DNA of 63,921 nt, counting the filler, from Olpidium bornovanus S191 (taxonomy: Eukaryota > Fungi > Olpidiomycota), in NCBI GenBank assembly GCA_017911155.1. It is 31 parts of 31 records of this genome, joined end to end, with 100 filler letters (N's around TTAATTAATTAA, not from the genome) between each part and the next. Parts side by side here need not be neighbours in the genome. Positions count along the whole stretch, not along the records: positions 47,352 to 48,758 come from JAEFCI010005724.1; 30 more parts are not named here. One strand, written 5' to 3'. Every line of letters begins with the position of its first letter. Within the stretch, counting starts at the first letter, position 1. The position numbers were made by a program, and so were the translations under genes. Shown here piece by piece: positions 47,352 to 48,758 of the stretch. The notes below the pieces were generated by a model that ran no database searches, was not told the origin of the DNA, and saw only the letters and a list, made by a program, of their open reading frames with translations.

Positions 47352-48758
47352 CCTTCTTTCCTCCACGCCGGGCTTGCGACCTCCTTTATCATACTTTTGT
47401 ACTGCGGCATCCTCTTATACCGCGGGAGGATTGCCGCCCAGGAAACGGGCGTCACGTTGGTGTTCGGACATGGCACGTTTATACTCCTCAGGATGTCTCA
47501 TAATCGCTCCAGGCGAATCGGGTTTCTTCTTCGCTTGGTGCTCAACAGGCAAAAGAGCTTAAGCGCCATGGAAGCGCGGCGATCAGCGCAATTGTTGTTG
47601 GGCATTCTGCCCGCAAGGATCCTGCAGCGAGTGATCGACGACCCGCGTGCAATGATTGTAGAAGAGTTCGCGGCCGTGACGTTTCTCCACCTCGACATCT
47701 GCGGTACGTTTGCGATTGCGCGAAATTGCCAGTTGCTCGCCTTTACTACAGATCGCCAACCCGCGGTAGTATTCCCTCACTTCCTCCTTCTCACTCCCCG
47801 GCGAAATTTTTCCGTAATATTCAGATTTCACCGCTCTTTCTTCCGGCCTATCGCCGGACGCTGTCGTCGTGCTGTTGAACATATTGTTCACGCAGTTTGA
47901 CGACGTTTGCCGGAAGTACGACGTAGAGAAGGTGCGCGTTTCGCATTTTTAGCGGATCGGAAGCGCCCCGGGCGTTTTGGCCGGTTCCTGCTCGCCCCAG
48001 AGAATTTTTTTTTTGCGTTCCTTTTTTTTTTCCCCTGCTTCTAACGCAACTCCCTCGCCGTCGTTGTGGACCGGCCAGATGACAACCCTCGGCGACGCCT
48101 ACGTGGCTTACGGAGTCTCCAATACGGCCACTCTCGCGGCGGAAGCGGGGAAACCGGGGAGGGGCGACGACGAGGCGTACCTGCCGGTCGCGCTGGCCAC
48201 GTGCCGGGCTGCGGTGGAACTGCAGCACGTCGTCGCGCAGTTCAACGCGTCGGAGATCGCGGCGGAGCTGCTCGAACCCTCGGGGAAGTCGCTGGTGAAG
48301 GTCCGGGTGGCGGTGCACACGGGCGGGGCGCACGGCTGTGTTCTCGGTCAGTTTCCCTGAGCTCGAAAGAAAAATGCCGGGTGAAGAAGCAAAAGGAGGG
48401 TTGGTGGGGGAGAGGCGGGGGTATGAGAAAAGGGGGCGGGAGGCCGTGTAACCCCGACCCCCCTTCCAATGTCGAAGTCTGACTTCGGCAAAAAAAAAAA
48501 TTATTTTCTTCCCCGGTCGGCCGGCCTCGAAAGGTGGGAGCACCAGGCTCAAGTACGAATTCGTCGGCGAGGCGATCCGCGTGGCGGAAAAGGTCCAAGA
48601 GATGTGCCCCAAAGGGTCGGCGTCCGTCAGCGAGGCGACGCTCGCTCGCCTGGGGCCGGCGGGACAGGAGATCCTGAAAACGGGCCACGGCGCGGTGGAC
48701 GACCTTCAGATGACCGTCCTGCCCGCCTTGGTCGAGGGCCTCCGCAGCTTCGTCATGA
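47352..48758 (+). CDS. Membrane-associated class III adenylate/guanylate cyclase, internal fragment (C1-like domain after a TM segment)
   Basis: Exons ...-47703, 47825-47931, 48079-48346 and 48534-... give RIGFLLR...EARRSAQLLLGILPARIL...VTFLHLDICDFTALSSGLSPDAVVVLLNILFTQFDDVCRKYDVEKMTTLGDAYVAYGV...VRVAVHTGGAHGCVLGGSTRLKYEFVGEAIRVAEKVQEMCPKGSASVSEAT. Confidence 0.88.

Follow-up and report, generated by a model that had tools for sequence, protein, structure and literature searches.

What kind of enzyme does a nucleotide cyclase domain belong to that has kept both metal-holding aspartates (Asp) while the residues for purine selection and for the transition state are gone? Zoosporic fungi steer their swimming spores by cyclic nucleotides, and to our knowledge only the rhodopsin cyclases have been studied among the cyclases of these fungi. 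The question is raised by one piece (positions 47352 to 48758, record JAEFCI010005724.1) of a stretch of 63,921 nucleotides (nt) from Olpidium bornovanus S191 (assembly GCA_017911155.1), called the window here. A first-pass annotation had described this piece as an animal-style transmembrane (TM) nucleotide cyclase with a half-active domain of the C1 type. A literature search on chytrid transmembrane adenylyl cyclases yielded nothing specific. From the analysis presented here we consider it highly probable that this piece represents the 3′ end of an intron-bearing and expressed gene for a class III membrane cyclase with two catalytic domains in one chain. The exons cover the last part of the second membrane block, followed by a helical linker and by the second catalytic domain, which is C-terminal.

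The exon joints were first predicted from the sequence and then checked against transcript contigs of two runs, X1 and X2. All exons and introns are on the plus strand. Exon 1 (47352..47703), whose 5′ side is clipped by the edge of the piece and whose 3′ end is set by the spliced contigs, covers the end of the TM block and the helical linker and runs into the cyclase domain as far as its first strand. It is followed by intron 1 (47704..47824, 121 nt, phase 1) and by exon 2 (47825..47931) with the best-conserved part of the cyclase domain. After intron 2 (47932..48078, 147 nt, phase 0), exon 3 (48079..48346) runs from MTTLGDAY through the HTG strand and aligns with EKITTIGDAYVA...MRIGVHTGP of the related proteins described below. 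Intron 3 (48347..48533, 187 nt, phase 1) separates it from exon 4 (48534..48758), which encodes the helix bearing the catalytic asparagine (Asn) and arginine (Arg) in canonical cyclases and whose open frame leaves the piece. All three introns are of the GT..AG type, and each of the joints 47703/47825, 47931/48079 and 48346/48534 is present in one spliced contig of X1 and one of X2. Across the four exons the open reading frame (ORF) holds 315 in-frame codons with a GC content at third codon positions (GC3) of 0.80.

Apart from the introns the X1 contig (2012, organism A, 4003 nt) shows no difference from the piece. The X2 contig (2025, organism B, 4182 nt) differs by a single G>T exchange at 47856 in exon 2, where X1 has G; the exchange turns CCG into CCT and is synonymous (proline). 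Identical or near-identical spliced transcripts are present in runs of 8 studies carrying two related organism labels. In a word search of sequencing runs the best runs contain 0.58-0.60 of the sampled words, and this share is close to that of the 31-mers which are wholly exonic (832/1377, 0.604). What the listed runs contain is therefore the spliced form, and transcription of the gene is seen in several studies. Intron words were found in none of the listed runs, so that all of these look RNA-derived, including those guessed to be DNA. Two raw RNA runs (X21 and X24) gave 0 matching reads, with about 6% of each run sampled, which is too little to inform.

The searches with the piece were run one exon at a time. 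Exon 2 alone matches the Pfam family PF00211 with 22.6 bits (Pfam cut-off 21.9, E 9e-5); exons 1, 3 and 4 alone gave nothing in Pfam at E <= 1, and in the relatives these three exons tile a PF00211 domain that scores 116-343 bits. Searched against 1.84 billion proteins, exon 1 by itself has 24 matches at E <= 1e-3, and none of these 1.84 billion representatives is near-identical to it. The protein of the piece itself does not occur in a collection of 15 billion proteins, exact look-ups of two exon-3 ORFs returned nothing on record, and neither a metagenome scan with the exon-1 protein nor one with an exact 30-mer gave a match. Among solved structures exon 1 alone matches only the mycobacterial cyclase Cya/Rv1625c (E 0.4-1.9). 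Exon 2 alone matches best the alpha subunit of soluble guanylyl cyclase (sGC; E 6e-4) and residues 403-436 of the mammalian adenylyl cyclase AC9, which lie within C1, and exons 3 and 4 alone gave only chance matches in the PDB, e.g., to designed repeat proteins and dehydrogenases.

For scoring the exons, hidden Markov models (HMMs) of the first and of the second cyclase domain were built from the relatives only. On the second-domain HMM exons 1-4 score 62.3, 31.4, 18.7, and 24.1 bits and occupy positions 4-77, 80-114, 115-184, and 188-224, in this order, and on the first-domain HMM they reach at most 11.6 bits. The match is far above chance, and the piece holds a class III cyclase domain. That this domain stands behind a membrane block, as had been claimed, is supported.

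In exon 1 a hydrophobic segment (residues 2-23, 47355..47420, plus strand) has Kyte-Doolittle means over 19 residues of 1.4-2.0 and is likely a TM helix, as judged by crude hydropathy only. A second, shorter hydrophobic stretch (residues 33-46, 47448..47489, plus strand) aligns with the last hydrophobic segment ahead of the second cyclase domain in the relatives. Past these segments exon 1 reads RRIGFLL...MEARRSAQLLLGILPARI and ends with FLHLDIC. The helical linker (residues 51-87, 47502..47612, plus strand), whose last residues are LLLGILP, lines up with the helical domain of Cya from mycobacteria (5o5k, 7yzi); this match is weak for the exon alone (E 0.4-1) and clear in the family alignment. 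Of the pattern given by the first-pass annotation, a hydrophobic segment followed by R..FL...E.....LLLGILP, the segment and LLLGILP are present, whereas the spacing is approximate and not literal.

The catalytic motifs it had quoted, HLDICDFT, MTTLGD, LGDAY and GEAIRVAEK, are all on the plus strand of the piece. HLDICDFT straddles the joint of exons 1 and 2. Its Asp, the first metal-binding one (codon GAC, 47694..47696), aligns with the D of LHMDIAGFT in the relatives and of FADIEGFT in C1 of the adenylyl cyclase AC5, and the second metal-binding Asp (codon GAC of LGDAY, 48094..48096) aligns with ILGDCYY of AC5 and AC8 C1. The position of the purine-selecting lysine or glutamate (Lys/Glu) is taken by a threonine (Thr; codon ACA, 48082..48084); the counterparts of this Thr are the first T of EKITTIGD in the relatives and, in AC5 C2, the second K of EKIKTIGS. 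The remaining positions are in exon 4 (KYEFVGEAIRVAEK). At the second purine-selecting position there is a Glu (codon GAA of KYEFVG, 48557..48559), aligned with the D of FRYDLLG in the relatives and of QYDIWG in AC5 C2, and in the R-V-A-E-K codons (48578..48592) Arg replaces the catalytic Asn and Lys the catalytic Arg, where AC5 C2 has TVNVASR. All these codons are read on the plus strand. Thus both metal-holding Asp are kept, and the purine-selecting Lys/Glu and the transition-state Asn and Arg are gone; here the translations and the family alignment agree with what had been noticed before. In class III catalytic domains the two metal-binding Asp are located on strands beta1 and beta2/3, and the piece has both. 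A class III homodimer requires the catalytic Asn and Arg on helix alpha4. The domain has neither, and its residues show the pattern of a metal-binding half-site. We also considered whether RNA editing or alternative splicing restores the canonical Asn and Arg, a check that had been proposed earlier for splicing, and rejected this: GEAIRVAEK lies entirely within exon 4, which is contiguous and unchanged in both the X1 and the X2 contig.

The nearest relatives of the piece are 30 or more chytrid proteins. The named matches all come from Chytridiomycota and Hyaloraphidium, with genera such as Spizellomyces, Rhizoclosmatium, Chytriomyces, Geranomyces, Nowakowskiella, and Rhizophlyctis, and no blastoclad protein is among the matches; Olpidium itself lies outside the sampled chytrids. 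Complete models of the relatives are mostly 1200-1700 amino acids (aa) long and have two cyclase domains. Seven long relatives (1248-1520 aa) scanned with Pfam contain either two or three stretches of PF00211 each, with every other family below threshold; 21 matches of another search carry PF00211 only, and a rhodopsin family appeared in none of these proteins. Hydrophobic clusters precede each cyclase domain, again by crude hydropathy. The exons of the piece map one after another, with hardly any gaps, onto the second domain of the relatives; in P0016, for instance, exons 1-4 cover residues 1095-1158, 1161-1195, 1196-1267, and 1269-1303. The identity of the piece to the relatives is 35-38%, and that of the relatives among themselves is 51-65% over the core of the second domain. 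In exon 3 (48133-48190) a low-complexity stretch of about 15 extra residues (AAEAGKPGRGDDEAY) is present in none of the aligned relatives.

The second domain of the relatives reads LHMDIAGFT / EKITTIGDAY / FRYD..GxTVxxAE[KR], each motif being found in 19-22 of the 24 checked; the Asn position is filled by T, L, I, N or D, and the Arg position by K or, in rare cases, R (AEK). Roughly 15 relatives have an intact model of the first domain, which in them reads MFxD[LI]KN / IKTI[GNS][ST]K / YE[IV]YGDVVNTASRM; Lys, Asn and Arg are present and the second metal Asp is changed to serine or Thr. The first-domain models of the remaining relatives are truncated or divergent. The first domain of Hyaloraphidium deviates both in the helix and at the first metal position; residues 293-550 of P0048 (Hyaloraphidium curvatum) have the canonical adenine pair Lys and Asp (YFDVYG) and a Glu at the first metal position. 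The purine pair of the chytrid first domains is Lys and Glu (YE[IV]YG). As far as sequence comparison can tell, the Olpidium domain is a divergent outlier of this chytrid family of tandem cyclases.

Some entries of the family deserve caution. P0016, P0024, and P0036 carry the GenBank name 'Nitrogen permease regulator 2'; Pfam finds the cyclase domain only, and the names have probably been mis-transferred. The second-domain models of P0021 (a frameshift-like scramble past the HTG strand), P0010 (truncated) and P0022 (lacking the stretch after MDIAG) look damaged, likely by an annotation or assembly error.

Which half of a composite enzyme is encoded by the piece can be seen from the comparison with solved structures, for which the profile of the second domain included the exons of the piece as separate rows. 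The best solved matches of this profile are mammalian AC5, AC8, and AC9. It scores 97.9 bits with AC9 C1 vs 54.3 with C2, 80.7 with VC1 vs 59.8 with IIC2, and 126.5 with sGC alpha vs 74 with sGC beta; the two halves of AC5 are nearly equal (83.8 vs 82.5 bits). The first-domain profile prefers C2, with 110.3 bits for AC5 C2 vs 50.8 for C1 and 96.5 for IIC2 vs 44.9 for VC1, and scores about 124 bits with Rv1625c/Cya. From the preference of the second-domain profile for metal-binding halves it follows that the domain needs a complementary half, which upholds the earlier description of a C1-type half. Judged from these profiles and motifs, the family of the relatives is a pseudo-heterodimeric class III cyclase with its halves in the opposite order to the animal enzymes. 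Such an inverted order has been reported for the guanylyl cyclases of Toxoplasma, Plasmodium and ciliates and for Dictyostelium GCA (PMC6592433).

The position of the domain within its protein is given by the transcripts. Beyond the piece, the X1 contig continues for 3004 nt upstream and 47 nt downstream, and the X2 contig for 3006 nt upstream and 224 nt downstream. Since they stop so shortly past the piece, the domain must be C-terminal in a product of at most about 1390 aa, and there is no space for a second membrane block and a C2 domain behind it. The first-pass annotation had expected just these elements downstream; the transcripts instead run on for about 3.0 kb in the upstream direction. 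Its assignment to the junction of the TM block with C1a holds for the C1-like residues and profile matches and fails for the place in the chain, as the domain is the last of the protein and not the first. The animal-style order is not supported either, because the piece aligns to the C-terminal domain of the relatives and the partner with Lys, Asn and Arg is N-terminal in them. That two independent assemblies reach almost equally far upstream points to a real 5′ end, though one contig may cover two genes.

Taken alone, the Olpidium domain would not be able to catalyze as a homodimer. We propose that it packs head-to-tail on the first catalytic domain of the same protein, and that this first domain, which in the intact relatives carries Lys, Asn and Arg and has lost the second metal Asp, supplies the three residues in cis. 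Together the two domains would make up a complete active site plus a degenerate pocket that is possibly regulatory, and the helical linker could couple the domain pair to the membrane block. The division of labour would be that of animal C1 and C2 with the chain order reversed. The product is probably cyclic AMP (cAMP), because the relatives have Lys at the purine position of the first domain; our confidence in this assignment is low, since the residue paired with this Lys is Glu and not the canonical Asp.

The missing residues could also come from another polypeptide. The domain would then be the sole cyclase domain of a true heterodimer subunit and pair in trans with a protein giving Lys/Glu, Asn and Arg, for which sGC alpha/beta and the heterodimeric rhodopsin cyclases of chytrids would be the models. 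The best single-domain solved match of the family profile, and of exon 2, is indeed sGC alpha, the metal-binding subunit of a two-chain enzyme, and the upstream part of the gene lies outside the piece; in addition, heterodimeric rhodopsin cyclases have been described from chytrids (PMC10622942, PMC8815786). Three observations stand against this. The upstream transcript has the span which membrane block 1, domain 1 and membrane block 2 take up in the relatives, every full-length relative checked has its first cyclase domain in cis, and the Pfam scans of the relatives show no rhodopsin family. We therefore regard pairing in trans as unlikely and retain two domains in one chain as the preferred arrangement.

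Somewhat less probable still is a dead pseudo-cyclase domain, i.e., a homodimer or a decaying copy, whether retained in a scaffolding or regulatory role or not retained. The exchanges Asn to Arg, Arg to Lys and Lys/Glu to Thr could be read in this way, as could the Asp in place of the conserved glycine of DIxGFT, the low-complexity insertion and the divergence of the piece, which is far greater than that among the chytrid members. Thr, the absence of Asn, and Lys are, however, the conserved state of the second domain in the chytrid relatives and are expected of a metal-binding half-site. Both metal Asp have been kept, all 315 codons are open with their high GC3, and the transcripts are correctly spliced in the runs of several studies. 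That the piece is a contaminant or an assembly artefact foreign to the labelled organism is very improbable: the absence of its protein from the 15 billion proteins and of its intron words from the listed runs would fit, but spliced transcripts with 0 and 1 differences over 950 nt occur in 8 studies under two related labels, and removal of normal GT..AG introns yields one continuous cyclase domain.

Two further readings of the piece were tried and rejected. Intron 1 is open in frame, giving an ORF of 167 aa if retained, yet it is spliced out in the transcript contigs. An antisense ORF of 254 aa with a TTG start (47848..48612, minus strand) crosses introns 2 and 3 of the plus-strand transcript and is unsupported; it is the longest ORF of the piece and likely a by-product of GC-rich coding DNA. 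As to the introns, intron 2 contains T-runs of 11 and 12 T (47996-48040) and intron 3 an A-run of 11 A (48490-48500), and the branch-site-like sequences CTAAC and CTGAC are found 43 and 50 nt upstream of acceptors.

Several points weigh against a two-domain membrane cyclase as described here. For the 3 kb upstream of the piece, the first domain and first membrane block are deduced from how long the transcripts are and from relatives with no more than 35-38% identity. One contig can span two genes, so that 3 kb of upstream transcript do not prove a single ORF. The stop codon is beyond the piece, and the TM calls come from hydropathy alone. The domain departs from its family at several conserved spots, reading DICDFT instead of DIAGFT and YEF with Glu where the family has Asp, placing Arg at the Asn position and carrying the insertion in exon 3, so that its activity is not assured. 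Enzymatic data for this gene or for its chytrid relatives were not present in the literature retrieved in a non-exhaustive search.

A more far-reaching idea, which we put forward as speculation and hold to be improbable, is that the piece represents a deep-branching form of a widespread and biochemically unstudied group of opisthokont membrane cyclases with inverted halves. Its departures from the family, namely Arg at the Asn position, Glu and Thr at the purine positions of the degenerate pocket, Asp in DIxGFT, and the inserted loop, would then reflect a second pocket re-purposed for binding a regulator, or else a nucleotide specificity that is out of the ordinary and is set by the non-canonical Lys/Glu pair in the partner domain.

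For genome annotation it follows from the proposed arrangement that a domain such as this one should not be filed as a broken enzyme, as the other half is expected to supply the missing residues. With this piece, a chytrid-wide family which has the build of the hormone-sensitive animal adenylyl cyclases with the halves reversed gains an expressed, divergent member. Should the full gene confirm the architecture, it would add another lineage in which to ask what is sensed by the membrane blocks and which of the two orders came first in opisthokonts.

Two types of fungal cyclase may serve for comparison first. The Cyr1 type is soluble, with LRR and PP2C parts ahead of the cyclase, whereas the piece has hydrophobic segments and the helical linker directly ahead; this comparison was made with the general layout of the type. 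The rhodopsin guanylyl cyclases (BeGC1/CyclOp, RGC/NeoR) have an N-terminal type I rhodopsin, which is absent from the relatives, and the cyclase residues Glu/Cys, Asn and Arg, which are missing here, and their solved cyclase domains score 91-96 bits with the second-domain profile, compared to 126-138 bits for sGC alpha and NPR-A. Groups 6 and 7 of Blastocladiella emersonii are multi-TM proteins with tandem adenylyl cyclase domains (Leonard et al. 2022, PMC9730499). By description only they are alike in being cyclases of a zoosporic fungus with a duplicated cyclase domain and several TM regions.

The mycobacterial Cya/Rv1625c (7yzk, 5o5k), an adenylyl cyclase with six TM segments, shares the layout of membrane block, helical domain and class IIIa cyclase domain. 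It is a homodimer with all catalytic residues in one domain, of which the Olpidium domain lacks three. In Dictyostelium GCA and the alveolate guanylyl cyclases (Toxoplasma ATPaseP-GC, Plasmodium GC alpha/beta, Paramecium GC) domain 1 carries the nucleotide-binding and transition-state residues and domain 2 the metal Asp (PMC6592433); this likeness is taken from the literature and not from a sequence comparison. The inverted tandem order agrees with the C-terminal metal Asp of the piece, while N-terminal purine and transition-state residues were seen in the relatives only. These enzymes have a Glu-type guanine signature, in contrast to the Lys of the chytrid first domains, and the alveolate ones also have an N-terminal P4-ATPase part, where Pfam finds only PF00211 in the relatives.

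The animal adenylyl cyclases AC5, AC8, and AC9 (8sl3, 8buz, 6r3q, 1azs) are the best solved matches of both family profiles (E 1e-40 to 1e-48). They follow the same plan of two membrane blocks and two class III domains with a composite site, to which one half contributes the metal Asp and the other Lys, Asn and Arg. Two domains and two membrane blocks in one chain are found in the relatives, and the transcript length of the Olpidium gene is compatible with this. The metal-binding half comes first in the animal enzymes (C1), whereas it is the last in Olpidium and the C2-like half is the first in the relatives; the purine pair is Lys/Asp in animals and Lys/Glu in the chytrid first domains. The closest systems are the chytrid tandem cyclases themselves (Spizellomyces punctatus SPPG_04407, Rhizoclosmatium globosum BCR33DRAFT_766665, Chytriomyces confervae CcCBS67573_g02177), uncharacterized proteins named 'adenylate cyclase' automatically in UniProt. 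Despite DICDFT for DIAGFT, YEF for YD, Arg at the Asn position and the exon 3 insertion, the Olpidium domain is colinear with their C-terminal domain and shares with it both metal Asp, Thr at the Lys/Glu position, the lack of Asn and the Lys in AEK, and the product of at most about 1390 aa is in keeping with their length of about 1200-1700 aa.

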